A stretch of DNA of 46,317 bases from assembly GCA_030390025.1 (NCBI GenBank), contig CM059434.1:45649684-45696000 (forward strand), in the 5' to 3' direction. The position numbers and the translations under genes were made by a program. The stretch is from Squalus acanthias. Taxonomy: Eukaryota. The notes under the pieces were generated by a model, which was not told the origin of the DNA, ran no database searches, and was given only the letters and a program-made list of their open reading frames with translations. Positions 450 to 22,498 of the stretch are shown piece after piece (the first letter of the stretch is position 1; each line of letters begins with the position of its first letter).

Positions 450-803
450 AAGGAAAGTTGGAGTTGAGAGTGAGTCAACATACTGTGGAAGTAATGTTTA
501 ATGAAAATGGGCTTCTACAGTGCGAAATTGCTGAACTCACTGGATCTACGCTGAGCGCAGAGAACTTGGGCGTTTTATGGTCTTTCACTAGTGACACTGA
601 AAAATCAAATGCCTTTGACTACAGAAATGGAGTAATAACTGCGCCATGGAAAGAAGCTGTGCTGTCAGAAAGCTCCATTCTAAATGGAAACATGTCACTG
701 TTGCTAAAAAGTGTCACATTTAAACACACCGGACTGTATCAATGTGAAGTTTTTATTCCACCAAATGATAAGGCCTCTAAGACGGTAAAGCTTGAGGTTT
801 TAG
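450..803 (+). CDS. NCR3LG1: B7-H6/NCR3LG1-like receptor, Ig V-set exon (first coding exon in window; leader exon upstream)
   Basis: Acceptor ctgcag|aa (NAGNAG alternative at 453) and donor G|gtaagc, phase 1-1. Protein GKLELRVSQ..LLQCEI..LGVLW..GNMSLLL..GLYQCEVFIPPNDKASKTVKLEVL has V-set Cys/Trp/YxC and resembles the human B7-H6 V domain (MGITW..GDASLRL..YRCEVVVTPLKAQGTVQLEV, recalled from memory). The gene is adjacent and convergent to KCNJ11, as in human. Confidence 0.8.
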
Positions 804-954
804 GTAAGCTGATTTATGTACAGTTACTGTAAACTATTGCACATTGCCGTGTAACACAATGCCATCCGTGTTCATATATCATAACTGTTTGTCTTTCTAT
901 GAAAATAGCTTTTGGAAACAAAATCTCGCAAATGAAATACCCTTAAATATAAAA

Positions 955-1085
955 TCAATATACTGCAGATGCTGCAAATCTGAAATAAAAACAGGAAATG
1001 CTGGAAACACTCAGCAGGTCAGGCAGAATCTTTGGAAAGAGAAACGGAGTTAACGTTTCAGGTCGATGACCTTTCGTCAGAACTA
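955..1085 (-). mobile_element. Penelope-like element terminal fragment
   Basis: Matches the termini of the element at 14236-16159 (aaatgctggaaa..cagc..ggagagagaaac..gttaacgtttc). Confidence 0.7.
1048..1084 (-). ncRNA. Minimal type-I hammerhead ribozyme motif (Penelope type)
   Basis: Minus strand reads AGUU-CUGACGA-A-AGGUC-AUC-GACCU-GAAACGUU-AACU: both core boxes, a 5-bp stem II, palindromic stem III (ACGU) and stem I AGUU/AACU. Confidence 0.65.
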
Positions 1086-2315
1086 TTGAAAAAGAAAATG
1101 CTTTGCACCGAGTGTCTAATGTTTTCTGAACTGATTAGTATACTTTTATTAATGGCCCAATAATACATGTGTGTAGAAGTTGCCACACAATCTAACAATC
1201 CTCATTCAGATCTTGAAACATTTTATTTGTGTGATGCATAGTAAAATCTCATTAAGTTGATCACCAAAAGGACTGGTCAAAGGTAGTTGATTCTGTAAGG
1301 TGCTTGGGTTAGTGGGAGATGAAGTACTCGGTTGAAGCTGACTATTAAGTGCTCTAGCATTAAAATGAAAGTTTGAAAAGCATTCTAACAGCTTTCATCC
1401 CAGCAGAAGTAGAAGGAGGTTCTAACAGCAATTTTTCTTTACCTTCACTTGCACACCATGATTATCTGATCCTTCTGGCTGATACTATAATAAGAGTTAG
1501 TAATAACCAATAAATGCCGTCCAATTTTCAGACAGCCATGCAGAGCTCACAATCAGTTGGAATTTTCTCTTAACACCTTTAGGGAACCTTCCAGATTTAT
1601 AGATTTCTCTATCTGCTTGATATTGTTCAAATTCTAATAATGGAATGATAGAAACATATAAACAAATCACTTGATTAAGTAATCAAGTTTTTATACAACG
1701 TATTTGTACAAATGCTGGAGTTTCTTGGAATGCAAACTTTTTTTTTATAGTTCAAAATCCTTGCGTATAACATACGCAATGAACTATAGCTAACAGAACA
1801 AAATGAGAATAATGTAAACTTCACAGCGTTGCCAGATGTATCCCCAGTCATGTTCCTTTATATATATTTAACAGTGACAAATACAAGATGATACATATTG
1901 GTATCAAATCATGTACTTTTTTTTAGGTGTATTGTATATCATTAGTTGAATTAATAACAAGAACTAGATGTAATGTAAAAGTTAACCAAATTGAAAGTGT
2001 CAACAAACAGTCGGCATTTACAAAGGGAAATAAAACACAAGCGTGCGCTTGACTGAAGAACTGGCACATGCCTCAAATAAGCACATTGTTGCCCACGGAT
2101 AAATGTGCTACATTAACACTTAACTACTGTTAGTTATGATTAACAATGATGTTTAAACTCTCTCTCAATTTTTTTCACATGTGGAACTGAAATAGATTAA
2201 AAAACCTTCTGCACATCAGCAGTCATGGATCTCTTAAATTTAAATGTTATACTGTATCAAGAAAGAACTTGCATTTATATAGCCCCTTTTACTTCTTCAG
2301 GATGTCGCATCGAGT

Positions 2316-3790
2316 CTACAGCACAGAATCAGACCATTCGGCTCAACTGGTCTATGCCAGCATTTATGCTCCACACGAGCCTCCTCCCATCTTTCTTTAT
2401 CTAACCCTATCAGCGTGTACCCTTCTATTTCTTCCTCCCTCATGTGCTTATCTATGCTATTTGCCTCAACTACTTGTGACAACGAGCTCCACATTCTTGC
2501 CATTCTTTGGTAAAGAACTTTCTCCTGAATTCCCTATTGGATTTATTAGTGACTATCTTATATTTATGACCTCTAGTTTTGGTCTCCCCACAAGTGGAAA
2601 CATTTTTTCCACTACTACCCTATGAAACCCTTTCATTATGTTAAAGACCACTGTCACCCCCTGCCTTCTCTTTTCTAGAGAAAAGAGCCCCAGCCTGTTA
2701 AGTCTTTCCTGATGGTTATAACCTCTCAGTTCTGGAATCATTTTTGCACCTTCTCCAGTGCCTCTATATCATTTTTATAATATGGAGACCAGAACTGTGC
2801 ACAGTACTCCAAGTGGGGTATAACCAAGGTTCTATACAAGTTTAACATAACTTCTCTGCTTTTCAATTTTATTCCTCTAGAAATGAACCCCAATGCTTGG
2901 TTTGCTTTTTTTTTTAATGGCCTTATTAACCTGCATTGCTACTTTTAGTGATTTGTGTATCTGTACCCCGAGATCCCTTTGCTCCTCTACCCCATTTAGA
3001 CTTATTATCCAACCAGTATGTGACCTCCTTATTCTTCCTACCGAAATGCATCACCTCACACCTATATTGAAATTAATTTGCCAATTACACGCCCATTCTG
3101 CAAGTGTATTAATGTCTTGTATTTTTGTCACAATCTTCCTTTGTATTAACTACACCCCTCAATTTAGTGGTGTCTGCAAATTTTAAAATTGTACTTCCGA
3201 TTCCCGAGTCCAAATCGTTAATGTAAATTGTGAACAACAGTGGTCCCAGCACCGACCCCTGTGGAACACAACTTACCACCTTTTTCCAGTCTGAGTAGCT
3301 ACCCTTAACTCCTACCCCCTCTTTTTTTGTTTTATAGCCAACTTGCTATCCACTCTGCTACCTGTCTCATGATTCAATTTGCGCTGACCTTAGTCATGAG
3401 TCTACTATGCGGTACCTTATCAAAGGCCTTTTTGAAAATTCAAATATATTGCAACTACTGCATTACCCTTGTCTACTTTTTCTGTTACTTCTTCAAAGAA
3501 CTCAATAAGGTTGGTCAAGCATGACTTTCCCTATTGAAATCTGTGCTGACTACTCTATTTTCGGTTTCTCGATGTTTTTCTATTACATCTTTGAGTAAAG
3601 ATTCCATTATCTTTCTTGCAACCAGTGTTAAACTAACTGTTCTATAGTTCCATGATCCTGTTTAACTCCCTTTTTAAATATAGGAATCACAATAGCTGTC
3701 CGCCTGTCCTCTGGCACTATTTCCTTTTCTAATGATTTTTATATATATATATATATATATATATGTAATAGTGCCTCTTCTATCTCTTCC
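2316..3790 (-). mobile_element. Degraded CR1-like LINE (3' part of ORF2 plus tail)
   Basis: Fragmentary ORF2 peptide ERLNRLGLFSLEKRR. Homologous to the young copy at 9374-11928. Confidence 0.85.
3741..3764. repeat. (AT)12 microsatellite
   Basis: Read directly from the sequence. Confidence 0.9.
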
Positions 3791-3888
3791 CTAATTTCTT
3801 TTAATATGCACAGATCCAATTCAGTGAATTACTTTTGAAGTATAGCCACTGTGATTAGTGCCGCTAACGTACCTGTTTGTTTTGGCAG

Positions 3889-4215
3889 CACGTCCCACAG
3901 TGACTGTGGTTTCAGAAAAAATTGTGGAAGTTGGCACTGGTGGAGAGATGGCCTTGGGCTGTCAGTTAAGCGGATATTATCCTTGCGACAGCAATGCTGA
4001 ATGGTTTCAGTCAACCCCACCACAAGGAGAAACAAAACCGTTAACTGACATTTGCATTGCTCCGCCAGTCAAAAACCCTGATGGAACATGCAATTTAACC
4101 ACTGAAGTTAGATTGGAGCCTCGTGTAGAAGACATTGGCAGCACTTTCGAATGCCGTGTGACACACAAGACTTTTTCGGAGCCATACTCTGTGAATGCTT
4201 TAGTGACTTTGAAAG
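3889..4215 (+). CDS. NCR3LG1: NCR3LG1-like exon: extracellular Ig C1 domain
   Basis: Branch point ctaac 3864-3868, acceptor ttggcag|ca, donor G|gtcagt. ARPTV..LGCQLSGYYP..EWF..KNPDGTCNLTT..FECRVTH fits C1-set and carries the B7-H6-like KNxDGT motif. Confidence 0.85.
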
Positions 4216-4774
4216 GTCAGTTGTGGTGGTCTTAGCTTTTTATTAAAATGCAAAACACGAAACTTTTTGGTTAAGTTAGTATTGAAAAGCACGCCAGTGT
4301 TAACCGATGTATTGTAGTTTTAACTTTTATAGGGGAGCAAAGGCCTTTTGAACTTTCATGTGTTTATTAAACTGATGTATTTTTAAAGCATGTTTTAAAT
4401 TGGTGTTAATACAAAACTCTGCTATTGACTTCTTCCTACAGTAAATTAGATTACATGTATATTGTGAATAATAACTATTATTTTGCTACGGTTTTGAGCA
4501 TTTTGTGGGAGGTTTTTTGAATCCATGGAAAGCATTTTTAAGTACCAGACTTGTGTTCCATCCAATAATCTGGACACCTTTTCCTTACCAAACATCCAGT
4601 TCTGACCTCCGCATGTGTTTTGATGACTTTTCACAACTCTTGAGAAAGGTTAATTGTAACTTGTTTATTTGACTCGTATATTTTCCACTTCACTGCATTA
4701 ACAAATCTTTTTCGTGGGAAATTAGCCTGCGACCGTTGTTCCTCATGGAGTAGGTTCCAATCTTGACTAAGATT

Positions 4775-5625
4775 TTTACATAGAAGATACAGCACAGAAA
4801 CAGGCCATTCGGCCCATCTAGTCCGTGCTGGTGTTTATACTCCACGAGTCTCCTCCTATTCCATCTGCCTCATCTCAGCCTTTCAGCACATCTTTCTATT
4901 CCCTTTTCTCTCTTGTACTCATCTAGTTTCCTTTTGAAAGCATCTCAGTTATTTGTCTCAAGCACTTCCTGTGGTAGCAAGTTCCACATTCTCACCACTC
5001 TGAGTAAAGAAATTTCTCCTTATTTTGCTATTGGATTTATTAGTAACTATCTTGTATTTATGGCCCTTAGTTTTGGATCCTCCCCTAAGTGGAAACATTC
5101 TCTCCACATCTACACTGTCCAACCCATTTATAATTTTTAAGGTCTCCATCAGGTGACCTCTGAGTCTTCTCTTCTACAGAAAAAAGCCCAACCTGTTCAT
5201 TCTTTTCCGATAGCTGTAATATCTCAGTTCTGGTACCATTCCTAAATATCTTTTTTGCACTTTCTCCAGTGCTTCTATGTTCTTTTTATATTAGGAGACC
5301 AGAACTGTGCATCCTGACCAGGGTCCTATACAAGTTTAACAAATTCTGTACCCCTAGAAATAAATCCCAGTGTTTTGTTAGCATTTTTAATGCCTTTGCT
5401 GCGATGCTTCTTTTACTGATTTGTTCACCTGTATCCCTAAATCCCTTTGCTCTTCTACTCCATTCAGTTTTTTTTATTTTCTAAGATGTCGGTGATGTTT
5501 CTATTTTTCCTAACAAAGTGCATCACCTCACATTTATCAATGTTAATGTTCATTTGCCACTAAACTGCCCAGTCTGCACGTTTTCTAATGTCCCATCGCT
5601 GATCCTTGTGGAACACCGCTTTCTA
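4775..5625 (-). mobile_element. Degraded CR1-like LINE 3' fragment
   Basis: Peptide ETLKIINGLDSVDVERMFP..RRNFFTQ and a CR1-type 3' tail. Confidence 0.8.
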
Positions 5626-5853
5626 ACTTACCAATAGCCAGATTGCAAATAATATGAGACACTCGGGTGTGAACAAATGCCTGTTATTTGTGAGCACTTT
5701 CCCTGATTGGCTGGTCCAGTGCTGTGCTAAGTATTTCTCTGGCATACTTTACTCTTATTACATAGATTTACACTTATGCAGTTTTACACTAGTGAGTTGT
5801 GGAACCATTAAAAAAAGATCCAATATGAGAGATATGTAACTTTTCTTTTACAG

Positions 5854-5970
5854 AAGCAGAAATTCGTCTGAGCACAGGATCAATAGTTGGAAGCATCATT
5901 GCGAGCATTATTATTTCTGTTGTAATAATAGCAATAGGAATTTTCCTCTACATGCGGTACTATTATAAAG
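5854..5970 (+). CDS. NCR3LG1: NCR3LG1-like exon: transmembrane segment (absent from ORF track)
   Basis: Acceptor ttttcttttacag|aa, donor AAAG|gtaaac, 117 nt, phase 1-1. Translates to EAEIRLSTGSIVGSIIASIIISVVIIAIGIFLYMRYYYK: a hydrophobic stretch of about 24 aa followed by basic residues, with no stop. Confidence 0.88.
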
Positions 5971-7540
5971 GTAAACCTACATTCTCGGTGTTGTGTGCTA
6001 CTTTGGACAGATTAGGGAATAAACTTGGGAATAAAATGACTCAAAGGAAACTTGGGCTATGGGGAGTGGGGGGTGCAATGAAAACTCTTACTGCTGCATA
6101 GTTTCTGCTGTTACAGCAAATTCTTGTGTCTTCTGGTTAACCAATGCTGCCCCAAACTTTCTACAATTGCTTGATTTTTTTTTTTGTTGCATCAAGTTGT
6201 AGCAGCCCCAGTCTAGTGTTAGTAGATGGTTAATCTGCCAATTTGAGTGCTTAATTGAGATGCAAACTACATATGAAATGTTTAACCATGAAGTGCATTG
6301 TATTTGTGTTTTGTATTTTGATGGATAATTTTCATAAATTTTCTGCTTAGAATCTTCTACCTTCATAAACTCCTTAATAATTTGCTCTTTGCAACTAAGG
6401 AGTGTTACTGTACTCTGACCTTTTATGTTGTCTTATTGTACTTTAATCTTTGATCTGGTACCAGTGTTGCTGATAACCATTTAGTATATTCTGGAATTTA
6501 CTGTCAGTGGATCAGGTGAACATTTACAAGGGAAGGAAACTCTAAAGGGAGTAATTGTTAATTCAAAATGCTCCACCTTTTGAAAGGAAAATGAGGAGCT
6601 TACTTTCAATTTATTTAATATTTACTTCCAAAATGTAAATTTTTCTGCTAACATGAAAGTCCTCAAGTAGGGTCTTTGTACCTGTTGAACTTCAAGTTGA
6701 CTTGCGGGCCCTTTGGCGTCTTGAAACCGTTCCATAGGCTTGGAATGTGGATACATCATTATTTTTGTTATTTCTCATTTGTTCTCCTTCTTAAAATAGT
6801 TCAGTTCTCTTTTGCAATTTCTTCTGTGTTCCATTACCCAATTTCCCTTCTGTTAACACCCTTTTCTGTTGCTCTCTTTTTAATCTTCATCTCTAAACTT
6901 CCAGTATTATTTCGAAGTGCATCATTGTTGACCCTGACTCTGTTGCAATCCCACATTTTTAGACAGTATTTAATTGTTTTCCTTTTTGCTAACTCCATTT
7001 TGCACTTAGCCTGTATATTTTTGTGCTCACTTCACGAACCTGTTTCCTTGATCACTACCTTCCAGTAAACTCTAAGCTGGTAAGTTACCATAGGAGAAGA
7101 TGTCCTCCATGCACTTGGTGTAGTGAAATTGTAACTGTGTTCTTCATAAATTTTTTTTTTGCAATTTTGCTATACCTTGTGCATAGAGAAAATCTTCCCC
7201 CTCCACTAATCAGTTTCTCCAAGCTCATGCCAGATTAAGTGAATCCCAATATTAATGTAATTCATTTAAATTTAGGCTAACATCAGTCTCTACTTAATGT
7301 TGGCATAAATCCCCTGCGTGACTGTGAGCAATTTCATAGATCTGCTAGTGTTCATAATTTTTAAGAAGGTTTTTGGCTAATCTAGATGGTGAACGTGAAA
7401 TATGAAAATTAAATCAAATGACAGCATTTCACAATCGGTGAAGACCACTTTATACCAACTGATAGGAATTTTCAGGAAGTGTCAATGATAATTTGGAACA
7501 ATCCAACTTGAAATTTCTTTCAATTTTCTTTTATTCCCAG

Positions 7541-7963
7541 TTGCACCAATAGTATCAGACATTCAAATACCTGCCCGAATTGTACACCAAGAAACTGCAG
7601 AGTTTACCTGCCATGTGTCTGGATTCCGACCTGATGTTATTACTGTCTGCTGGTATTTGAGGAGGGCGAAGGGCTCTGAAAAGAAATTGATTAGTGACTG
7701 GCACAGAGACAACATGTTCCACATACCATTCGTCAAGGACAGGAGAATAGACATGACTGGAGAAAGGAGTGAAACTAAGAACGGATGGAAAGTCAAGGTG
7801 CCCAGTTTCCAGAAAAATGCTGATGGAACATTCAGTTTTTCTAGCATTCTTGAAGTTTATCCTGACATCAATGAGGACAATGAAGCAGAAATCATATGTA
7901 AAGTGATACATTCCGCCAGCAGTGAAGACACCTCCAAAAGCATTCGTTTACAAATTGATGGAG
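7541..7963 (+). CDS. NCR3LG1: Post-TM Ig C1 domain 1 (with long insertion)
   Basis: Acceptor ttttattcccag|tt, donor G|gtaagc. VAPIVSDIQIPARIVHQETAEFTCHVSGFRP..CWY..KNADGTFSFSS..IICKVIH. Confidence 0.85.
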
Positions 7964-8549
7964 GTAAGCTTTTTATAAGTCAATCAAAAGTCACTATTCT
8001 GTTAGGTAGAATATGTGGACACTTCGTGTTCAGGTTGATCGCACCTCCAATTTCCACTGCCATTTGTTGATTACAGTCATTAAATGTTGCAATCCCAGGT
8101 CATGTACCCTAGAATTGACAATCTTGAGTTTTCAAATTAGTGCATTATGGTATTGTGGCCCTCAGGTTTTCTCATAATTAAAGAGAGTAGAACTTTTCTG
8201 GGATGAGGAGGAAATCTAATTATGGAAGATGAAAGTATGGTGGAGATATTAAATAGATCATTTGTCAATTTTTATATGATGGCGGAAGTGAGAATTCAGT
8301 TGTATTAGAGGAGGATGTGAACATCGCTATTTTGTGGGACAGATGGATTTTTTCTACAAATATGTTCATTTACACTTCCAAGAATAAACAAACTTATTGT
8401 AGAAAAGCAGAGGTGCAATTTGCTGCAGTTTTCTTGGCTGATTTACAAAACATGTTAGTAATTCAAGGTTTGGTCATTTTTAGAATAACTAGTTGATATC
8501 CTGTGGTGTTGCTCGTGGATCAACAAGAAAGTGGCTCCCGTTTACTGTC

Positions 8550-9005
8550 CCACTCACATTCACTCGTGCAGGAGTGAACAAAAGTGGGCCCAGCACTGAC
8601 CCCGGGATATATCACTTACAACTCTTCTCCAATCTGAGCAACACCTATTAACCCTGACCCTTGATTGCTGTCTCAACCAACTTTCTGCTACATTTCCTCT
8701 TCTACTATATACTTGAGTTTTTGTAACCAGTGTCTTGATAACCTTATCAAACTGCTTCTGAAAAATCCAAATGCAGTACATCTACTGAATTCCCTTTATA
8801 CAATCTGTCACCTCTTTTTTAAGAAAAGCTATTAAATTTATCAAACAAGACTTGCCTTCAACAAATCCGTGCTCCATGTCCTTGATTATCCTCTGCATCT
8901 CTAAATGCTGGTTAATTTAATCACAAATTATGGATTCTAAAAATTTGCCCGCAACTGATAAATTAACTAGTCTATAGTTACCTGCTTTATCCTTCTTGAA
9001 CAACA
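8550..9005 (-). mobile_element. Old CR1-like RT fragment
   Basis: Degenerate DFQKxFDKV and GSVLGP-region sequence. Confidence 0.65.
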
Positions 9006-9066
9006 GTTATCTGGTACAGTGGCAAATAAATTATTTTACTTCCAATATCCTTATTAAAAATAAATA

Positions 9067-9351
9067 CAGTAAACTCTTGTTTAAACGGCACTTTATCATC
9101 CAGAATACTTTAATAACCGGCAAAATAGATATATCTCAATACAAAACAACACCTCAATAACTGGTAATCTTGCCGAATTTAACGAAACATTCTGTAGGTG
9201 AGTACCCAATTATACAGTACATTTCTTGATTTTTTTTATTTTTGTTTGTGTTAAAAATTGCCTTGGTAGGTATACCTCTCTGTTATCCAGAATTTTTCAT
9301 CAACCGGCACCATCCTGGTCCCTTAGGTGCCAGATAAGAAGGAGTTTACTG
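9067..9351. mobile_element. Tc1/mariner (Tigger/pogo-like) MITE, copy 1
   Basis: TIRs CAGTAAACTC...GAGTTTACTG flanked by TA at 9065-9066 and 9352-9353. Confidence 0.85.
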
Positions 9352-9373
9352 TAGTAAAGACTTCTATATTATA

Positions 9374-11928
9374 AGAACATAAGAAATAAGAACAGGAGTA
9401 GGCCAATCGGCCCTTCGAGCCTGCTCCGCCATTCAATAAGATCATGGCTGATCTGATCCTCACCTCAAATCTAAAGAACACAAGAAGTAGGAGCAGGACC
9501 CGGCCACTCAGCCCCTGGGCCCGCTACGCCACCCACAGGGCCTCGACCGATCCGAACTCAGCCTCATGTCCAATTTCCTGCCCGCTCCCCGTAACCCCTA
9601 ATTCCCTTTACTTCTAGGAAACTGTCTATTTCTGTTTTAAATTTATTTAATGATGTAGCTTCCACAGCTTCCTGGGGCAGCAAATTCCACAGACCTACTA
9701 CCCTCTGAGTGAAGAAGTTTCTCCTCATCTCAGTTTTGAAAGAGCAGCCCCTTATTCTAAGATTATGCCCCCTAGTTCTAGTTTCACCCATCCTTGGGAA
9801 CATCCTTACCGCATCCACCCGATCAAGCCCCTTCACAATCTTATATGTTTCAATAAGATCGCCTCTCATTCTTCTGAACTCCAATGAGTAGAGTCCTAAT
9901 CTACTCAACCTCTCCTCGTATGTCCACCCCCTCATCCCGGGGATTAACCGAGTGAACCTTCTTTGTACTGCCTCGAGAGCAAGTATGTCTTTTCTTAAGT
10001 ATGGACACCAAAACTGTATGCAGTATTCCAGATGCGGTCTCACCAATACCTTATATAACTGCAGCAATACCTCCCTGTTTTTATAATCTATCCCCCTAGC
10101 AATAAAAGCCAACATTCCGTTGGCCTTCTTGATCACCTGCTGCACCTGCATACTAACTTTTTGATTTTCTTGCACTAGGACCCCCAGATCCCTTTGTACT
10201 GCAGTACTTTCCAGTTTCTCGCCATTAAGATAATAACTTGCTCTTTGATTTTTCCTGCCAAAGTGTATAACCTCACATTTTCCAATATTGTATTGCATCT
10301 GCCAAATCTCCGCCCACTCACCCAGCTTGTCTATATCCCCTTGTAGGTTTTTTATGTCCTCCTCACTTTCTACTTTCCCTCCCATCTTTGTATCATCTGC
10401 AAACTTTGATATGTTGCACTCGGTCCCCTCCTCCAAATCGTTAATATAGATTGTAAAGAGTTGGGGACCCAGCACCGACCCCTGCGGAACACCACTGGCT
10501 ACTGGTTGCCAGTCCGAGAATGAACCATTTATCCCAACTCTCTGCTTCCTGTTAGATAACCAATCCTCCACCCATGCCAGAATATTCCCCCCAATCCAGT
10601 GATTTTTTATCTTGAGCAATAATCTTTTATGTGGCACCTTGTCGAATGCCTTCTGGAAGTCTAAATACACTACGTCCATTGGGTCTCCTTTATCCACCCT
10701 GTACGTTATGTCCTCAAAGAACTCAAGCAAATTTGTCAGACATGATTTCCCCTTCATAAAGCCATGCTGACTTTGTCCTATCAAATTATGTTTATCTAAA
10801 TGTTCCGTTACTGGCTCCTTAATAATAGACTCCAAAATTTTACCCACCACAGATGTTAGACTAACTGGTCTATAATTTCCAGCTTTCTGCCTACTACCCT
10901 TTTTAAATAAGGGTGTTACATTAGCAGTTTTCCAATCTGCCGGGACCTTTGCTGATTCCAGGGAATTTTGGAAAATTATTACCAAAGCATCCACAATCCC
11001 TATTGCCACTTCCCTCAAGACCCTAGGATGTAAGCCATCAGGTCCAGGGGATTTATCCGCCTTGAGTCCCATTATTTTACTGAGTACCAATTCCTTAGTG
11101 ATTTTAATCGTATTTAGCTCCTCCCCCCCCTAGAGCCCCCTGTTTGTCCAGTGTTGGGATATTCTTAGTGTCCTCTACCGTAAAGACTGAAACAAAATAT
11201 TTGTTCAGCATTTTTGCCATCTCCATGTTTCCCACCATTAATTTCCCGGTCTCATCCTCTAAGGGACCTACGTTTGCCTTAGCCACCCTTTTTCTTTTTA
11301 TATAACTATAGAAACTCTTGCTATCTGTTTTTATATTTTTTGCTCATTTATTTTCATAATCTATCTTCCCTTTCTTAATCAATCCTTTAGTTACTTTTTG
11401 CTGTCTTTTGAAGACTTCCCAATCTTCTATCCTCCCACTAAGTTTGGCTACCTTATATGTCCTTGTTTTTAGTTGGATACTATCCTTAATTTCTTTACTT
11501 AGCCACGGATGGCTGTCATTTCTTTTACACCCTTTTTTCCTCAGTGGAATATATATTTTTTGAAAGTTGTAAAATAACTCCTTAAATGAACATCACTGCT
11601 CATGTACCGTCTTACCCTTTAATCTATTTTCCCAGTCCACTTTAATCAATTCCGCTCTCATACCATCATAGTCTCCTTTATTCAAGCTCAGTACGCTTGT
11701 CTGAGAACCAACCTTCTCACCCTCTAATTGGATATGGAATTCAACCATGTTATGGTCACTCATTCCAAGGGGATCCTTAACTAGGACATTATTAATTAAT
11801 CCTGACTCATTACACAGGACCAGGTCCAAGGTTGCTTGCCCCCTTGTAGGATCAGTTACATACTGCTCAAGAAATCCATCCCTAATACACTCAATAAACT
11901 CTTCCTCAAGGCTGCTCTGCCCAATTTG
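9374..11928 (-). mobile_element. Young 5'-truncated CR1-like LINE with uninterrupted 508-aa RT-containing ORF (9564-11090)
   Basis: KSPGPDG, YRPVSLTS, YLDFQKAFDKV, GVPQGSVLGP and FADD motifs. The upstream part has two TGA stops (about 11593 and 11344) and a frameshift at the C8 run 11123-11130. Most of the endonuclease is missing. Possible TSD ATTATA (9368-9373 and 11929-11934). Confidence 0.95.
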
Positions 11929-12588
11929 ATTATATAGTAGCCATTCTTTTTTGGCCCTTCTATCCTTTTCACCTGCTCACTATACCTTCTATATTTTGAT
12001 TTCCTTTAGTATTCTTAGCCCTAGTTTTATCATATGCCTCCTTTTTAAGTTTTAATTTAGGTTTTACCTACAAACTCTATTCTTTGATGCATTCTTTTTT
12101 GCCAGATATATAAATATATTTTCGACACCTTTCATCTAACATTTGAAAATTCTTCACTGCCGATCCGTGGTCCTGTTTTCTAACGTAAAATCACCCCAAT
12201 ATTATTGCCCAGTTGTTCTTGCATCTCTCTGTGAAATGTCTAAATATTTCCTCTTGTATCTTATCTTCACTATTTGGTGGCCTACAGCAATGGTAAGATA
12301 GTACCTGTACTATTTTTCTTTTTCCTTAGCTTTATCCATATAGACTCTATCTTAACCTAAGCTTTTAGAACATCCTTACATTTTAACACTGGGCTAGAAT
12401 ACTTTACGAATACTGCTACCCCACCCCCTTTTTCCTTCTCCATCTCTCCTGAGGCAAATAGATGGAGTTAAGATACAGATTAGCCATGATCTAATTGAAT
12501 GACGGAACCAGCTCGTAGGGCTGAATGGCCTACTCCTGTTCCCATGTTCCTAACTCTGTCCTGGGTGAGATTATCTCTCTGTTGCATT

Positions 12589-12689
12589 CAACGTTCCCTA
12601 TAAGCTGTGCGACTGCGCAGCTCTCTGCCGGTCCCGTGCAGCCCTTTAAAGGGGCAGTGCACCCAAAATAAAAATAAGATGGAACATTG
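12589..12689. mobile_element. Small hAT-like MITE
   Basis: Ends CAACGTTCC / GGAACATTG, with 8-bp flanks GTTGCATT and GTTACACT (6/8 identical). Confidence 0.55.
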
Positions 12690-13007
12690 GTTACACTTGT
12701 CCTGAATTTGGAGCTGCACTATTGGCATGTCTGGAAATTGCTACAGGTGAAAAAGAAAAGAGATCTGCAGCATGGGTTAGGGTGGTGGAAGTAGGATAGG
12801 GAGCAGACCACTTACATGATTGCCAAAGAGAACTGAAATGGCTTAAGATTAATGGACACGCACCATTGTTTGTTTAATACATATATAGATAATGCTTTTT
12901 CATTTTGTGAATCATGTATGATAGAAGATAAATCAATAACATTTATCTTCAGAAATTGTGTATAATTAAAACTCTTTTTGTGTTTTGTGTTTCTCCCCCC
13001 CCTTTAG

Positions 13008-13370
13008 TTGCTCCTAAATTGGCTGAAATAATTCGACCCCATATCGTGCATCATAACAACTCAGCGATGCTGACTTGTCAGATAAATTTTTTCAAGCCAC
13101 GTCCTTTAAGGATCACATGGTACAAAATAATGAATAAAAAGAAACATCCTTTACTGAAATACGACAATGAAGCTGAAGAGAATATCTTTCTGAGCAAATA
13201 TTCCCATTATGTGAGTGAGTTTAATTTTCCTGACCACACTCTCAGTGTCTGGAGCATGTTGCTCTTTAATGCAACAATCCGAGAAGATGACGACAGTGAA
13301 TATTTCTGTGAAGTTGAACACATTGGTTTGAGAAATCCAGCAGAGAAACAGGTTAAACTGAAAGTAAAAG
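13008..13370 (+). CDS. NCR3LG1: Post-TM Ig C1 domain 2
   Basis: Acceptor ccctttag|tt, donor AAAG|gtaatc. VAPKLAEI..MLTCQINFFKP..ITWY..EYFCEVEH. Confidence 0.85.
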
Positions 13371-14235
13371 GTAATCCAAACCCAAAGTTCTTGATATTGC
13401 TCAGTCCTTTTTAAAATGTGTTGGTGTCTTCTTTCCTGTGTTCATATTGATACGAAGAATTTCAGTACTAGGGAATAGAACACCCTTCTATTCTGTGCAT
13501 TTATTGTCAGCATTAAGCACTTCCAGGTGTTTAGTTGTAAAGATGTGACCAACTATTGCAAATTTGATCATTTTTAAGTTGGTTATCTCTGCGGCGCCTC
13601 TGAGTGAAATTATCAATTTGCGGGCATTAAGAATTGTGTTGTGATTACTCTAACTTCCCTTGTGTAGGATTCTTACAAGTCATTAAAATAGGGAGACGTT
13701 CATCCTATCTTTTTGGAATGTATTTAAATCCAGGTACCAGAAGTGACAGAATAATGTGCTAAGTCATGGTGCCACCCTATCCCAGCCCTTTAGATTGCCT
13801 AAATTTTCCATAAATCTGTATGAATATACTTTTATTAAGCACTATCATCCAAATTCCATAAAGATTTAGCCTTTGTGAATGTAACATATCCAGAGTACTT
13901 TTATACATTATCTGAGAAAATAGTTGTGCTAAGAAAGCTCTTTGAGCTGGAGCTGACGTCCTTAGGGGTGGGTATCCTGCATCTAGTTGATTCTACACCT
14001 GAACTCAGGACGTTTAGTGTTGTTAGTGGATATAATTAGTGGAAAAATGCTGTTACCCTGCACCTGATCCCTTCATCTCGAGAGTCTATTCCCAAAACAA
14101 TAACATCTCTTATCTTTACAGATGCTGGTGGACCTGCTGTTTATTTCTAGCAATTTTTACTTCTATTTTCAATATGTAGTTTCTTCTTTTTCTTACTGTT
14201 TTAATTTATTCTGCCAACATCGTTAAAAATAGATT

Positions 14236-16159
14236 CAGGAAATGCTGGAAATACTTAGCAAGTCAGGCAGCATCTGTGGAGAGAGAAACAGAGTTAACGT
14301 TTCTGGTCGACCTTTCGTCAGAACTGGAAAAAGTTAGAGATGTAACAGATTTTAACCGGGGGAAGGGAGGGAAGGTCTGTGATAGGGTGGAAGGCAGGAG
14401 TGATTAAATGACAACAGGTATGATTGTACAAAGCAAAAGGGGATGGTAATGGGACAAGTAAAGAAACAAAAGATGGGACAAAGATGTAAATGGATATAGC
14501 AGAATCATAAACAGCTGCCATCTGGAAAAAATAGGGGCAGAGGTCATGGTCTGAAATTGTTGAACTCGATGTTGAGTCCAGAAGGCTGTAAAGTGCCTAA
14601 TCGAAAGATGAGGTGCTGCTGTTCGAGTTTACGTTGAAGTTCGTTGGAACAGTTTAAGAGACCGAGGTGGGAGTGGAGCGGAGAATTAAAGTGACAGGTG
14701 ACCGGAAGCTCAGGGTCACGCTTGCGAACTGAACGGAGGTGTTCCGCAAAATGGTCACCCAATCTGCGTTTGGTCTCCCCAATGTGGAGGAGTCTGCATT
14801 GTGAGCAGCGAATACAGTATACTAATTTGCAAGAAGTACAAGTAAATCGCTGTTTCACCTGGAAGGAGTGTTTGGGGCCCTGGACGGTGGGAAAGGAGGA
14901 GGTAAAAGGGCAGGTGTTGCATGCCCTGCGCTTGCACGGGAAGGTGCCAGGGGAAGGGGATGTTGGGCGTGATTGAGGAGTGGACCAGGGTGTCGCGGAA
15001 AGGGGAGGGGAAGTAGAATCAAGTTGTTGGCGGAAATGGCAGAGGATGGTGGTTCTTATTTCGACTCTTTTTCTCCCCTTGTCCAGTCTCTTCCCACCTA
15101 CATCCACGACTCTTCCGATGCCCTCCGCCACTTTAACAGTTTCCAGTTTCCTGGCCCCAACCATCTCCTTTTCACCATGGACGTCCAATCCCATTACACC
15201 TCCATCCCCACCAGGACGGCCTGAGGGCGCTCCGCTTCTTCCTTGAACAGAGGCCCAACCAGTCCCCATCCTTCACCATCCTCCTCCGCCTGGCTGAACT
15301 TGTTCTCACATTGAACAGCTTTTCCTTTGACTCCACTCACTTCCTCCAAATAAAAGGTGTTGCTATGAGTACCCACATGGGTCCTAGCTATGCCTGCCTT
15401 TTTTGGGGATATGTGGAACATTCTTTGTTCCAGTCCTACTCGGGTCCCCTCCCTCACCTCTTTTTCTGGTACATTGGTGACTTATCGGTGCTGTTTCCTG
15501 CTCTCGTCCTGAACTGGAAAATGTCATTCAATTTGCTTCCAATTTCCACCCTTCCCTCACCTTCACATGGTCCATCTCCGACTCTTCCCTTCCCTTCCTC
15601 GACTTCTCTGTCTCCATTTCTGGGGTTAGGCTATCGACAGATATCCACTATAAGCCCATTGACTCCCACAGCTACCTGGACTACACTTCCACCCCCGCTT
15701 CCTGTAAGGACTCCATTCCATTCTCCCAGTTTCTCCATCTCTGTTCTGATGATGCCACCTTCCATACCAGTGCTTCTGATATGTCTTCCTTTTTCCTCAA
15801 CCAAAGATTCCCCTCTACCGTGGTTGACAGAGTCCTCGACTGTGTCCATTCCATTTCCCAAACTTCTGCTCTCACCCCTTCCCCTCCCTCCCAGAACCAC
15901 GATAGGGTTCCCCTTGTCCTCACCTTTCACCCCACCAGCCTCCAACTTCAACGGATCATCCTCCGCCATTTCCAGCGTGATCCTACTACCGAACACATCT
16001 CTCCACCCCCCCCCCCCCTCCTCTTCGGCATTCCAAAGGGACTGCTGAAACATTAATCCTGTTTCTCTCTCCACAGATGCTGCCAGAGCTGCTGATTATT
16101 TCCAGCATTTTCTGATCTTTCGTCAGACTTCCAGTATCCGCAATATTTTGCTTTTGTAC
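14236..16159. mobile_element. Penelope-like retroelement with internal inversion (GIY-YIG part on -, RT part on +)
   Basis: Minus-strand LVYCIRCSQC..HIGETKRRLGDHFAEH..QPSGLN (GIY-YIG). Plus-strand LFTMDVQSHYTSIP and KGVAMSTHMGPSYACLF (RT). Inverted termini, and 12-bp direct repeat TAAAAATAGATT at 14224-14235 and 16160-16171. Confidence 0.9.
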
Positions 16160-16469
16160 TAAAAATAGATTATCTGGTCATTATCACATTGCTGTTTGTG
16201 GGACCTTGCTGTGTAAAAATTGGCTGCGCATTTCCTACATTACAATGTACATCGTATTGGGACATTTTTTTCTTTCCTTCCCTACTCTGACTTATAATTC
16301 AGTGCCCCCCCCCCCCCCCTGCACGCTGGATCCCAGATTGTGAATTGCCTAATTGATTGGCTAGATACTTTTAGGATGAGATCAGTTATCACACTCAAAT
16401 CCTTTGTCTATTCCTGCTAATGAACACCTTTCAGATTTTACACAAATTTACCATTACCTGTTTGTATAT

Positions 16470-16700
16470 CTTGGCTCAGTCGGTAGTTGAAAGTTGTGGG
16501 TTCAAACCACATTCCAGGCTGACCCTTCAGTACAGTACAGAATGAGTACTGCACTGCTGGAGGTGCCATCCTTTGGATGATATGTTAAACTGAGGCGCCA
16601 ACTTTCCTGTTCAGGTGGATGTTAAAGATCCCATTGAAATACTTTAAAGAACCGTGGTGTCAGGGCCATTCTTCTTTCAACCACCATCAAAAAAGATTCT
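16470..16700 (+). mobile_element. tRNA-headed Deu-type SINE remnant
   Basis: A-box-like TGGCTCAGTCGG, B-box-like GGTTCAAACC and core caggtggatgttaaagatccca. A second Deu-like piece lies at 14205-14235 plus 16160-16245. Confidence 0.6.
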
Positions 16701-16794
16701 GTTTTGAAAAATTAGTTTATCACAAATATGTAATATATATATATATTTATATATGTATGTATGTAGTAATATTCTACTGTTTTATATTTTACAG

Positions 16795-17106
16795 CTTTTC
16801 CTTCACTTAATGCCATCTTGTGTGAACCAGTGAACCCTGTAATTGGAAAAGAGTTGACTCTGTCCTGCAAAGTGCATTCATTTTATCCTGAAGCCATTAC
16901 TGTCCAATGGTTTAAAAATAAAGAAGCTATGAAGGATACTGAAACATCTGAAAAAATTCTGAATCTTGAGAATGAGTTGTATGAATTTACTAGTTCATGT
17001 ACAATTATTCCAACATTATTAGAGCGAGAGAGTAAATATAAATGCCAGGTTAATCATGAGAGCCTTATGTATCCAAGATTTGAAGAATATACTCCTGAAA
17101 ATTTGG
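16795..17106 (+). CDS. NCR3LG1: Post-TM Ig C1 domain 3
   Basis: Acceptor attttacag|ct, donor G|gtatgt. AFPSLNAILCEPVNPVIGKELTLSCKVHSFYPEAITVQWF..KYKCQVNH. Confidence 0.85.
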
Positions 17107-17652
17107 GTATGTTTATTCTCAGTTTAAAAACATTTCTGCAATATAAAACAGGTGGAACTTTTTGTTTATAATGAAACTAAATTTTGTTCTAATTTCATAA
17201 ACTGTATTCACTCAAATTTTTGTTATCGCTCCCCACCTTTCATCAGGATGGTTGAGTTTAGCAGTCAGCTGTTTCTGGTGTGCAAAACAGTATTACTGGA
17301 GTTTAAATGTGTTCTAATGCTACAGTTCCTCAGACAGTTAGGCAAACCTAATAGTACCCTAAATAGGTCAGCAAGAGAAGTTCACCAGCAAAAGTAGTTG
17401 TTCAGAGGGAATCCTAGCCAAGACTCAAGTTATACTGGTAGTCATAGTACTCTGACCATGGTAAAATTAGCTCACTGTCATCAAAATGAAGCGAAATTTT
17501 AATGTTAGTAGAGCATTGATGGGACATTAAGTTCCCCAGACCACATGGGAGTGTTTATAAATTTTAAACTTTGAAGAGCTACACTTAAAATAATGTGAGT
17601 GAAGGGGAGGGGAAAGGGGACAAAATTAGTTTGAACAAATTGGGTTTCAATG

Positions 17653-18098
17653 GGCCAAAATTTGCGGTCGGAGGCGTACCTCCAGAGTATGCCTCCGACC
17701 CGATTTAAAAAAAAAAAAAAATCCACACCTACCTGCTGGCTCCCGGGCTTCGGAGACTTCGGATCCTGGGCCTCCAGGTGTAAAGGCCCAAGCATCCCTG
17801 GGATCACGTGGGCCACGTCCTCCTTTCATAAAGGAGGATTCCTCATATGCTTATGGGGATTCTATTTACGAACATAATCCCCAAATAATTAAATAATTTA
17901 CACAACTGGAATAAAAGATTTTTGGGTCGGTGCAGATGATCTGTCACGGCGAACCATGACGGATCACAAGTACCGGGTTTTCGCACATGTGCAGCGCATG
18001 CGGAAACCCGGAACTTGCGGGCTCTTTCGCAAGTTTTACCAGGTTTACAATGGCGTACGCTGTGCATACGCCAGCATGGGGAATGGAAAATCTGGGCC
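17653..18098. mobile_element. PIF/Harbinger-like MITE
   Basis: Ends GGCCAAAATTT / AAAATCTGGGCC, with 3-bp ATG duplication (17650-17652, 18099-18101) and several internal hairpins. Confidence 0.7.
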
Positions 18099-18847
18099 AT
18101 GGTTACTAGTGGACCTGGTATCAGTGAAATCACATGGGACATTAAAAAGTCTTATTTCCCAAAAATGTGAACAGTGATGTTCAGGAAATAATGCTTGATC
18201 AGGCATTAAGTTCTTGATATGTAAATTTTATATGAAGTGATATTACAGTAAAGCAATTTTATTTTGCCACGCAATGACTGATCTAAATGTATCAGCAGTA
18301 ACATTATTGCATTGTGTTATGTTCCCATAATTTGAAATTAGTTAAAACACAAATTACTCCATTTTTGAAAAGCTTCCAAGTGCAATGCTGATTGGTGTCA
18401 TGCAATGCCAGGTGATGTGCCAAAATCCTGGTGACAATCCTGCGGTAGTTCAGCATATATTAGGAATTGAATCTTGGACCTTCCTGATCTGTGTAGTTTA
18501 CCACATTGTGCCTTTACATACTGAGCTATTCTGGTGCTTAAAATGTAATTGTTAGTTGGGAAGAAGGACTGAAGTAACCCTTTTCTGTGGAGCATTTTTT
18601 TAAATGACAAGCTCTAGCCTAGAGAATGACATTAGTTTAAAATACTAAGATTCATTTGCATTTCTGTGAGTATATAAATGTAGGGGTGAATGTTAATAGT
18701 CCACTTATTTGCTGCTTTCCAATTATCTTACAAACATTGAATACATTCAAAATAGTTTGTTACATAGATTTTTGGTACTAATATCTGAAACAAAGTTTGG
18801 AAAGATGTATTTCAGTTTTACTTACTTACTGTTTCTCTTTATTTCAG

Positions 18848-19174
18848 TATCTTTCCCCAAAGTATCTGAAATTGTCTGCAATCCTGCCATCCCTGAACTA
18901 GGGAAGAAATTGACTTTAATCTGTACTATAAGTGAGTTTTATCCAGAGGATATTCAAATTGACTGGTTCAGAGATGAGGTGAGAATGAACGAGATTTCAA
19001 AACATGGAAACATTAAGGAAGAATCATCCTGTGAAAATGGTCTGCACAAAAAAGTCACCCAAGTAACCTTGACTCCAAGTACTGATGATCATCAAGCTGA
19101 ATATAAAATTGAAGTTTGTCATTCAAAATCTTCAACCAAACCTCTTAAGCAATGTTTCCAGCTATTTCTTAAAG
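18848..19174 (+). CDS. NCR3LG1: Post-TM Ig C1 domain 4 (F-strand Cys replaced)
   Basis: Acceptor tttatttcag|ta, donor AAAG|gtgagt. VSFPKVSEIVCNPAIPELGKKLTLICTISEFYPEDIQIDWF..EYKIEVCH. Confidence 0.85.
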
Positions 19175-19569
19175 GTGAGTTTAAATTTTGTTTGCTGAAG
19201 ATGAAATGAGTTCTGCTGACAGCTGTTCAAAGATCGTAATCAAGAGGCTAACCTGAATTGATTGCAGGATCTGTACTTGCCCTGTGAAAGGTTAATGGAA
19301 ATGTATTTGAAATGCTAAAACATCTTAATTGTGCCATTATATATTTCTTTTGCTTTTCTTTGTTCTGAATATGGATTGCTCAATTTACAACTGATATTTG
19401 CTGCCTAAGTAGCGTTGTTGAGAAATATCCTGATCATACAACCATCTGCCAATTTGCCAATGCCATTTTCTGCTTCATCTTGGCCTGTGCAGGCTGAAGA
19501 AAATGAGTACAATAATGAAAAGTCTGCTTACTGCATATTGATATATTTAAGTTTTGAATATGAAGGGAA

Positions 19570-20230
19570 AATCTAACCACCCCCCTCTTGACATTCAATG
19601 GCATTATCATCGCCAAATATCCCACCATCCATATCCTGGGGGTCACCATTGACCAGAAACTCAACTGGACCAGCCACACAAATGTCACTAGAGCAGGTCA
19701 GAGGCTGGGTATTCTGTGGTGAGTGACCCACCTCCTGACTCCCCAAAGCCTCTCCACCACCTACAAGGCACAAGTCAGGAGTGGGATTGAATACTCTCCA
19801 CTTGTCTGGATGGGTGCAGTTGCAACAACACGCAAGAATCTCATCTATAACCAGGATAAGGCAGGCTGCTTGATCGGCACTCTATCCAGCATAAACATCT
19901 ACTCCCTCCACCATCGGCGTACTATGGATGCAGTGTGTACTGTGTACAGGAAGCACTGCAGCAGGTTGCCAAGGCTTCTTCGGCAGCAACTCCAGCAGGT
20001 GCATGGGAACACCGTCACCTCCAAGTTCCACTCCAAGTCACACATCATCCTGACTTGGACATATATTGCAATTCCTTCATTGTAGCTGGGTCAAAATCCT
20101 GTAATTCCCTACCCAACAGCACTGTGGGAGTACCTTCATGTTGAGGTTCATCTTCTCGAGGGTGAGTAGAGATGGGCAATAAATGCCAGCCTTGTCAGCG
20201 ATGCACATATCCAAAGAATGAATAAAAATA
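19570..20230 (+). mobile_element. Non-LTR retrotransposon ORF2 C-terminal/3' fragment (clade uncertain)
   Basis: Peptide TYKAQVRSGIEYSPLVWMGA..SLHHRRT, typical of the post-RT region, ending in aagaatgaataaaaa. Confidence 0.7.
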
Positions 20231-20303
20231 TAATTTTTGGCAGATAGGATGTGGCTTAATTTGGCCTTTTGTAACTATTAAATGTATTTTCTATGTGTTA
20301 TAG

Positions 20304-20615
20304 GCTCACCCAAATTTTCAGAGTTCAAAATGGAACCAGAGATCCCTTTGTATGGCAAGCCTTTATCTGTGTACCATTCAGTGTCTGGTCTTTTCCATGA
20401 AAATATTACTGTTCAGTGGTACAAAGCATCTGAGCAGGTTAAAGATGGAGTGACAATTTCAGATCCTGTGCGTACCCGTGAAAACACTTACAAAATAGAC
20501 AGTTGTCTGAAGTTTTCAGTGACTGCAGAAGACTTTGAAAGAGAGCTAATCTTTCAGTATAAAGACAATTCCAAAAGTGATGTATTCAAAAGACGTATTC
20601 AACTGCCCCTCAAAG
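20304..20615 (+). CDS. NCR3LG1: Post-TM Ig C1-like domain 5 (both canonical Cys lost)
   Basis: Acceptor tgttatag|gc, donor AAAG|gtgagt. GSPKFSEFKMEPEIPLYGKPLSVYHSVSGLFHENITVQWY..TYKIDSCL..ELIFQYKD aligns to its sister domains and has an open frame. Confidence 0.8.
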
Positions 20616-20715
20616 GTGAGTGTATTTCATGCACTGATGTTTAAATATGTTTTTAATGCAGGATTTGTCGATAATTTCTGTTAAAATATATGTATGATAT
20701 AGCATTGAAGATAAT

Positions 20716-21050
20716 GGCCTGGATTTTGTTGTGAGTGGTGAAGGAACAGGATTTACCGTTTACTTCGCGTACAGTTGGCCTCAGACTTTTAGCGGGCTTG
20801 TCAGCATAGACTTCCTCTCTTCCGGTGTCTCTTTGAATTTGGTGCCCTCTACAGGGGATCTGTGGCGTCTGTGCAGGGAAAGCATCAGGGAAGCTGTTCA
20901 ACCAATCAGATTGAAGAATCCTCACTGACACACGCCGACAACAAAGCAGGAAGTAAAAAAAAAAAGGACATATAAATTACATTTAAATCATTGTACAGGA
21001 AGCAAAATAAAGATTGGGACATACACATGGTATTAAGAGAAATACATAAA
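20716..21050 (+). repeat. Partial copy of the dispersed non-autonomous DNA element (family of 45603-46317)
   Basis: Shared gtgccctctacaggggatct..ccaatcagattgaagaatc..caggaagt. Starts with ggcctggattttg. Confidence 0.6.
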
Positions 21051-21273
21051 AGAGCATGTGTTCAGTGGAAATTACTTGGTACAAGTTTGAAGTAATTTTG
21101 TTTTGTATACATGGATTGTAAATATGTTATACCATTTTTTGGAACGTAAAATAAATATTCAACTTGAGCAGTTATTGAAAAACTTTTGAACCCATGAAAA
21201 TAATTATCTTTTTAGGAGTCTGATTGTATTGGTATTTGTGAGAATTACATTTTGTTACTGCATTTTTTCACAG

Positions 21274-21581
21274 CTGTGACTCCCAAAGTATCAGAAATCC
21301 AGTGTTGCCCTGCTGATCCCAAAAAGGGTCAAGACGCAACTCTTACTTGCATGATTGAACATTTTTGCCCAGTGGACATACTTGTTGTTTGGAGCAAGGG
21401 ATGGACGGAATACAAGGATAAACAAATCGTAGAAAAGCCCAAAATTGATGACAAGGGACTTTACTCTACAATTACAAAACTACCTATCGTTGCAGGTGCA
21501 GGTTCAGAAGAGTATACTTGTGAAGTTCGACACACAAAAACTAATGATATTATAGAGAAGACATTCACTCTGTGGATTTAG
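21274..21581 (+). CDS. NCR3LG1: Post-TM Ig C1 domain 6, terminal coding exon with stop
   Basis: Acceptor ttttttcacag|ct. AVTPKVSEIQCCPADPKKGQDATLTCMIEHFCP..VVW..GLYSTIT..EYTCEVRH..FTLWI-TAG. Confidence 0.85.
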
Positions 21582-21651
21582 GTATATTCTGTCATTTCAG
21601 TGCACCTTAATCATTTCTTTTAATAATGGCTGTTTTTGAAAATTTGAGCAT

Positions 21652-22241: not shown

Positions 22242-22498
22242 CAGTAAACTCTTTCGTATCCGGCCCCTATGGGACCAGAATGGTGCCAGTTGATAAATTC
22301 TGGATAACAGAGGTATACCTACCAAGGCAATTTTTAACACAATCAAAAATAAAAACCACTGACTAACTCTGCCACCGCGGGAGACTTGGACTCAGCAAAA
22401 CGAGTGCTGGATGGATTCGGCAAGATTACTGGTTATCTATTTTGCCGGTTATTAAAGTATTCTGGATGATTAAGTGCCGTTTAAACAAGAGTTTACTG
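22242..22498. mobile_element. Tigger/pogo-like MITE, copy 2 (inverted relative to 9067-9351)
   Basis: Same TIRs and TA flanks. Terminal regions are the reverse complement of copy 1, while the central part differs. Confidence 0.85.

Follow-up and report, generated by a model that had tools for sequence, protein, structure and literature searches.

We analysed a window of 46,317 nucleotides (nt) on the forward strand of the Squalus acanthias genome (GCA_030390025.1, CM059434.1:45,649,684–45,696,000); all positions below are counted from its first base. The window contains a B7-H6-like gene whose product is predicted to carry six C1-set immunoglobulin (Ig) domains behind a single transmembrane (TM) helix. 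An original prediction, made from the DNA letters, had proposed nine exons with AG/GT signals and phase-1 junctions, encoding a V domain, a C1 domain, a TM segment and six more C1 domains, and had placed these six in the cytosol. All nine exons were found where it had put them. They lie on the + strand, every acceptor is AG, each internal donor is GT and all junctions are in phase 1, as seen both by reading and by a script, which also counted zero in-frame stops in any of the nine.

The first exon (450–803, phase 1-1) encodes a V-set domain, scored at 40.7 bits by Pfam, which was run exon by exon with cut-offs of 26 bits for V-set and 21 bits for C1-set (PF07654). It is followed by the exon of C1a, the membrane-proximal C1-set domain that precedes the TM segment (3889–4215, 31.6 bits), and by a 117-base exon for the connecting peptide and the TM segment itself (5854–5970). 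Six further C1-set exons complete the frame: C1b (7541–7963, 140 codons, 36.7 bits, also present in spliced contigs), C1c (13008–13370, 28.2 bits, also aligned to orthologues), C1d (16795–17106, 62.3 bits), C1e (18848–19174, 45.0 bits, F-strand cysteine absent), C1f (20304–20615, 31.5 bits, both canonical cysteines absent) and C1g (21274–21581, 41.9 bits), which ends in a TAG stop at 21579–21581. All seven C exons were called as C1-set above the curated cut-off (28.2–62.3 bits), and the predicted order V–C1–TM–C1 ×6 stands. When the whole window was scanned in six frames with a C1 profile of the family, 7 of 659 stop-to-stop fragments matched. They correspond precisely to the seven C exons and all lie on the + strand; the scan found no further Ig exon elsewhere in the window. 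In a sequence search of the PDB, the closest solved sequences to C1d are IgA and IgG constant domains and SIRP C1 domains.

The TM exon encodes a hydrophobic core of ∼ 23 residues with a 19-residue Kyte–Doolittle mean of 2.96, followed by a basic end, R..K. On the same scale, no second hydrophobic segment was found in the other exons of the window (maximum 19-residue mean 1.40), in agreement with the single helix and trailing basic residues of the original prediction. A leader exon was not found at positions 1–449 and, being absent from the 449 bases 5′ of the V exon, must lie upstream of the window; contigs from S. acanthias carry 8–28 nt 5′ of the V exon. At the other end of the gene, the stop is directly followed by a donor-like GTATAT (21579–21590). 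All 14 orthologues described below nevertheless stop at the same residue as the window, with a hydrophobic-x-hydrophobic C-terminus (L-x-V/I). From the length of one contig (run X5) and an AATAAA near 22348, the last exon probably continues as 3′ untranslated region to ∼ 22340–22380.

Splicing of the transmembrane exon

Transcripts were followed over positions 3700–8100 in four of nine runs guessed to be RNA, X1 and X2 from study P1 and X3 and X5 from study P2, which carry two organism labels between them. In all four, one contig joins 4215 to 5854 and 5970 to 7541, with the GT..AG introns removed and 0–2 differing letters. These C1a–TM–C1b contigs measure 1906, 1572, 1925 and 3634 nt, with depths of 168, 69, 29 and 51. 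Most intron bins are empty, and bins 4288–4728 have a depth of zero in all four runs; together with the spliced contigs, these empty bins fit RNA. The gene is expressed, and its TM exon is spliced to C1 exons on both sides, through the two junctions that the original prediction had singled out. That prediction had also seen no TM or leader exon between 5971 and 7540, and the contigs, which pass from 5970 straight to 7541, rule out a separate gene or a hidden exon in this interval.

Beyond C1b, the contigs were compared with the remaining exons by length alone. Three of them reach exactly 675 nt past 7963, which equals C1c plus C1d (363 + 312), and the fourth reaches 2384 nt past it, as long as the five exons still to come before the stop (1622) with 762 nt added. 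The common end of three of the four contigs at the C1c + C1d length points to a branch in the assembly graph at the C1d/C1e boundary (16795–17106 / 18848). On these lengths, alternative splicing at that boundary possibly varies the number of tail domains.

The open frame might in principle be an artefact, with two genes (V–C1–TM and a separate C1 ×6) or decaying pseudo-exons joined in silico or by chimeric assembly. Adjacent phase-1 Ig exons can always be joined in frame, and the contigs, taken from Logan, are assemblies and not single molecules. The TM exon is nevertheless flanked by exact GT..AG joints in 4/4 runs from two studies, and the orthologues speak further against such a junction of unrelated parts, as set out in the next section.

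Kinship to B7-H6 and spread of the family

Among full-length PDB matches, the V exon is closest to B7-H3 (29.4 bits) and B7-H6 (25.8 bits, E = 8e-5). The C1a exon matches B7-H6 with 41.3 bits (E = 1.7e-9) amid many Ig constant domains, of which those of IgG score higher. Among the matches inspected, only B7-H6 covers the two exons in their correct order, which would agree with the B7-H6 kinship of the original prediction. The ectodomain consists of one V-set and one C1-type domain followed by the single TM segment, an order confirmed in contigs and orthologues. NCBI applies the name NCR3LG1 (natural cytotoxicity triggering receptor 3 ligand 1) to six members of the family, namely the orthologue of Amblyraja radiata and five amphibian proteins.

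The linkage to KCNJ11 that had been predicted is present as well. A single-exon open reading frame (ORF) on the − strand at 43613–44761 scores 197 bits with Pfam IRK and 226 bits with IRK_C, and it matches Kir6.2 (620.7 bits) better than Kir6.1 (559.5 bits); we identify it as KCNJ11. In the window, KCNJ11 lies tail to tail with the gene described here. Human NCR3LG1 has KCNJ11/ABCC8 as neighbours and lies in one domain with them (PMC8065166). On the exon matches, the database names and this linkage, the gene is likely the orthologue of NCR3LG1.

Searching 1.84 billion representative proteins with the C1b exon gave 210 matches at E ≤ 0.001, most of them 600–2100 residues long. In one of these, a sawshark protein of 969 aa (P0002), a leader is followed by V, C1, the same helix and six C1 domains, and the protein ends at the residue position at which the window's frame ends. 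With P0002 as query, 13 more full-length orthologues of 890–974 aa were retrieved, which belong to sharks, rays, skates and the elephant shark. The order leader–V–C1–TM–six C1 is therefore common to at least 14 orthologues (890–974 aa) in cartilaginous fish, a holocephalan included, and the helix is also encoded by three ORFs of 949 aa on transcript contigs from skates.

Every exon of the window aligns to all 14 orthologues in the same order, with identities of 40–84% for the tail domains against 53–81% for V. To the elephant shark, the identities are 54% (V), 62% (C1a), 58% (TM), 46% (C1b), 61% (C1c), 55% (C1d), 62% (C1e), 51% (C1f) and 49% (C1g). Since the values of the individual exons are similar, the tail appears about as constrained as the ectodomain, and protein identity shows it to be under purifying selection. 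The TM helix and its basic flank are conserved in 14/14 orthologues.

The collinear plan and common stop position of the 14 orthologues, and tail domains about as conserved as V, are difficult to reconcile with an artefact of joining. C1f, although free of the canonical cysteines, has 84% identity to the corresponding domain of Pristiophorus and a confidently predicted C1 fold (see below), which rules it out as a pseudo-exon. We regard an artefact as scarcely credible and already close to refuted.

The same plan, with 2 to 14 domains after the helix, recurs in a second paralogue group of chondrichthyans and in coelacanth, lungfish, reedfish (a relative of the bichirs), electric eel (a teleost), caecilians, newts and many frogs. 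Of 147 representatives with a C1 match, 79 have a single internal helix at residue 150–400 and at least 250 residues after it; among further amphibian and coelacanth matches, this helix-and-tail plan was present in 45 of 49. Protein models show the whole plan to be kept across jawed non-amniote vertebrates. Protein searches returned no amniote member with an Ig tail; these searches were length-limited and word-seeded, so that absence is not proven. The databases carry members of the family, as automatic models, under the names 'uncharacterized', 'titin-like', 'hemicentin-like' or NCR3LG1.

Consecutive locus numbers occur in Callorhinchus (LOC103174893/LOC103174894), Protopterus (LOC122810504/5) and Microcaecilia (LOC115468917/8), which suggests an old tandem pair of family members. 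The window holds one member; the second may sit upstream of it. In four Xenopus paralogues (P0281, P0282, P0144 and P0283), the helix is followed by one to three C1 domains and then by Pfam Tachylectin domains (105–241 bits). Two of the four repeat the unit, with an unassigned beta-rich stretch after each lectin.

Location of the six post-helix domains

We place the six C1 domains behind the helix (∼ 680 residues) in the cytosol as the tail of a type I membrane protein, with a probability of roughly 0.6. Standard rules assign a tail to the cytosol when a cleaved leader is combined with one stop-transfer helix and a basic C-side. The leader peptide is seen in orthologues and is outside the window for S. 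acanthias; in 70 of the 79 family members, positive charge is greater on the C-side of the helix than on its other side, topology being judged with crude hydrophobicity scales.

Cysteine retention differs between the two sides of the helix. Using a profile built from the C exons of the window and iterated once on its matches, we found both canonical cysteines in 77 of 78 membrane-proximal C1 domains before the helix. Of 433 domains after it, both cysteines are kept in 202, only that of the B-strand in 71, only that of the F-strand in 37 and neither in 123, so that 108 have a single cysteine; ten further post-helix domains with gaps at the cysteine columns were set aside. Where a cysteine has been lost, V, L, I or A takes its place; 395/433 domains retain the core tryptophan. 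Three related arrays with a C-terminal TM segment, which are hence extracellular, have the cysteine pair in 42/42 domains. A Fisher test of 77/78 versus 202/433 gives 1e-21, a value that ignores shared ancestry: orthologues repeat one another's patterns, for example 'absent, kept, kept, absent, absent, absent', and independent events are far fewer than the counts.

In the window, the canonical pair is present in C1a and missing in two of the six tail domains, C1e and C1f. C1e lacks the F-strand cysteine in 14/14 orthologues, and C1f is without both cysteines in the window and in all 14. AlphaFold2 gives C1f a predicted local distance difference test score (pLDDT) of 94.1 and a confident C1 fold despite the missing cysteines; its top Foldseek matches are the C1-set domains of class II major histocompatibility complex (MHC) molecules, the Ig C-lambda domain of light chains, IgE-Fc, IgNAR and beta-2-microglobulin. 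C1b is modelled as an Ig domain with a pLDDT of 81.1, in which residues 58–77 fall below 50 and represent a disordered loop of ∼ 20 residues.

Across the family, there are 1.25 glycosylation sequons per 100 aa before the helix (observed/expected 1.66) versus 0.64 after it (1.13), again with ancestry ignored, which weakens the comparison as support for the cytosol; the density is higher before the helix in 63/79 members. Within the orthogroup, the corresponding values are 1.13 (1.33) and 0.70 (1.06), and the three control arrays have 0.86–1.26 per 100 aa (observed/expected 1.22–2.78). Taken together, the cysteine and sequon statistics lean to a non-oxidising, non-glycosylating location of the tail.

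Several points weigh against this placement. C1b, C1c, C1d and C1g keep both cysteines in 13–14 of the 14 orthologues despite their very long divergence, and 11 of the 14 retain an N-x-S site in C1c, a degree of conservation similar to that of the best ectodomain sequons; both features are easier to explain if those domains fold in the endoplasmic reticulum (ER). C1-set and Tachylectin domains are usually located outside cells. To our knowledge, C1-set domains are confined to the cell exterior and the lumen of the ER, and we know of no cytosolic precedent for them; the Tachylectin domains that some Xenopus paralogues carry after the helix are likewise of a type usually found outside cells. NCBI isoforms without exactly the TM exon exist in two paralogues (Microcaecilia LOC115468918 X3, −37 aa; a Heterodontus paralogue, X3, −31 aa), and leaderless NCBI models exist in Chiloscyllium plagiosum, Scyliorhinus torazame and a Heterodontus paralogue. 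Finally, the library type of the four runs was guessed to be RNA, a limit on the transcript evidence, although spliced contigs and empty introns fit that guess.

A rival reading is a secreted product. Since all exons are in phase 1, loss of the TM exon keeps the frame and gives a secreted all-Ig chain. The TM exon would then be a frame-preserving cassette, the skipped form (V–C1–C1 ×6) a soluble ligand or decoy with its six C1 domains at work outside the cell, and the tail of the TM form merely carried along. The two TM-less NCBI models, the cysteine pairs in four of the six tail domains, the C1c sequon and the usually extracellular nature of both domain types agree with such a product. Nevertheless, the joint it requires (4215>7541) is listed in none of the four runs, bearing in mind that contigs lose rare variants, whereas a TM-containing contig was assembled in all four. 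Except for short fragments, the orthogroup members and isoforms inspected all have the helix, and helix and basic flank are conserved throughout the 14 orthologues. Moreover, 231 of the 433 post-TM domains lack a complete cysteine pair, 108 of them with a single unpaired cysteine, against 0/42 in the extracellular controls, and sequons after the helix are at chance level. We therefore consider it unlikely that the tail works mainly in a secreted form.

The leaderless models in C. plagiosum, S. torazame and Heterodontus raise another option, in which the hydrophobic segment encoded by such transcripts acts as a signal anchor of type II, leaving V–C1 inside and the six C1 domains outside. The charge bias of the helix, more positive on its C-side in 70/79, opposes a type II orientation, and the complete cysteine pairs and enriched sequons fall on the V–C1 side. 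In our judgement, leaderless models are often by-products of annotation, and we hold this orientation to be very improbable.

The evidence on the cytosolic tail of the original prediction is mixed: the splice, the single TM segment, the leader in orthologues and the lean of cysteines and sequons support it, whereas four tail domains that keep their pair and TM-skipped NCBI isoforms do not.

Two further observations concern the sides of the membrane. In the Heterodontus francisci paralogue P0003 and its isoforms, an acidic motif of ∼ 20 residues with D-x-x-L-L stands right after the helix, and three to four copies of it recur at the C-terminus, behind seven cysteine-poor Ig domains; the motif at both ends suggests that both ends of that array lie on one side of the membrane. 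C1a (3889–4215) has five cysteines conserved in 14/14 orthologues, one of which must be unpaired within the domain and may link two molecules into a covalent dimer outside the cell.

Possible working, known systems and other features of the window

In the reading that we favour, the main mRNA of this probable B7-H6 orthologue encodes a leader, V, C1, the TM helix, six C1-set Ig domains and a stop. The V–C1 pair would face outward as the ligand part, serving, by analogy with B7-H6, a receptor of the NKp30 type. The six C1 domains would form a rod of ∼ 680 residues that stays in the cytosol and starts ∼ 7 residues below the membrane. With low certainty, we suggest that this rod acts inside the cell as a module for binding or sensing and, according to whether it is occupied, changes how the outer ligand is displayed, clustered or turned over, so that the state of the cell interior is coupled to the ligand. 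Such coupling is proposed by analogy with butyrophilins, in which an intracellular B30.2 domain is coupled to a B7-like ectodomain. The original prediction had offered a scaffold, a decoy or sensor for pathogen proteins, or a retention module as roles that such a tail could have. If the frame-preserving TM cassette is sometimes skipped, a minor secreted all-Ig product may arise as well. The varying number of domains and the lectin swap in frogs would fit a recognition role under diversifying pressure.

Extended to the family, a tentative reading is that the ancestral B7-H6 of jawed vertebrates was two-sided, an outward NKp30-type ligand joined to a cytosolic C1-set rod, and served as an inside-out sensor older than and parallel to butyrophilins that was lost or replaced in amniotes. 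As part of this reading, and just as tentatively, the intracellular part may be an interchangeable module, which differs between paralogues: an array of 2 to 14 C1 domains in some, a Tachylectin propeller in those of Xenopus, an acidic tail in others.

The closest known system is mammalian B7-H6, with which the shark gene shares a leader, a V and a C1-type domain, a single TM segment, the KCNJ11 neighbour and matching ectodomain exons. The tail of human B7-H6 comprises ∼ 170 residues without Ig domains, whereas the shark gene has six C1-set domains after the helix. Butyrophilins, the model for inside-out signalling via an intracellular B30.2 domain, resemble the predicted protein in their B7-like two-domain ectodomain, one helix and large folded intracellular module. 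They differ in the module itself, since the post-TM part is here a C1-set array, or Tachylectin in some Xenopus paralogues, and Pfam found no B30.2/SPRY domain in any exon. Integrin beta-4 and the titin/obscurin class set a precedent for outside-type or Ig-like modules in the cytosol, often without disulfides; however, these modules are FnIII or I-set and not C1-set, and no immune-ligand ectodomain is attached to them. C1-set domains are hallmark modules of adaptive immunity, found in Ig, the T-cell receptor (TCR), MHC molecules, beta-2-microglobulin and tapasin.

Long C1-set arrays in cartilaginous fish are also known from UrIg and UrIg2 of elasmobranchs, which consist of VJ plus 3 to 11 C1 domains with a C-terminal TM segment (PMC12227049). 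In UrIg2, the TM segment comes after the whole array, which is therefore extracellular throughout, and the canonical disulfide is present in every domain that has been solved; UrIg is linked to the MHC, and UrIg2 is located close to the TCR/IgH loci (PMC12227049). The solved UrIg2 chain 9dmx is among the matches of C1a. The shark gene, in contrast, is linked to KCNJ11 and its TM segment precedes six C1 domains. The C-terminal TM segment and the different linkage of UrIg and UrIg2 rule out that it is one of these.

We found no published description of Ig domains behind the TM segment of B7-H6, or of such loci, although earlier accounts of B7H6 evolution and their supplements may mention long Xenopus or shark tails. 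The post-membrane C1 array represents a new architectural variant of the known B7-H6 family, and a conserved family with C1 arrays behind a stop-transfer helix spans chimaeras to frogs. If the tail is cytosolic, it would contain the first C1-set domains working in the cytosol and change the view of what this fold can do; B7-H6 would have had an ancestral role inside the cell that is no longer seen in mammals, and the principle known from butyrophilins would have a second example. If, instead, the arrays work in a secreted splice form, the family would be a new class of soluble proteins with many C1 domains, in which a TM cassette in the middle of the gene acts as the switch; this would also be unusual. 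In either case, dozens of database entries at present listed as 'uncharacterized', 'titin-like' or 'hemicentin-like' can be given a name and studied.

The window also contains mobile elements. A reverse-transcriptase ORF of 508 codons lies antisense inside the C1b–C1c intron (9564–11090, − strand; Pfam RVT_1, 105 bits), and two more are found on the + strand at 24066–24542 (39 bits) and 33865–34413 (56 bits). A Harbinger-like transposase ORF of 308 codons is situated between the gene and KCNJ11 (32076–33002, − strand; DDE_Tnp_4, 76.9 bits). At 28841–29895, a G-rich tandem array with a 21-base unit, ∼ 52 copies and 81% matches marks the peak of GC content and GC skew in the window. In the C1a–TM intron, positions 4729–5169 have a summed contig depth of 4,670 to 44,769 in the four runs, with many variant letters and loose ends; this segment is an abundant transcribed interspersed repeat.

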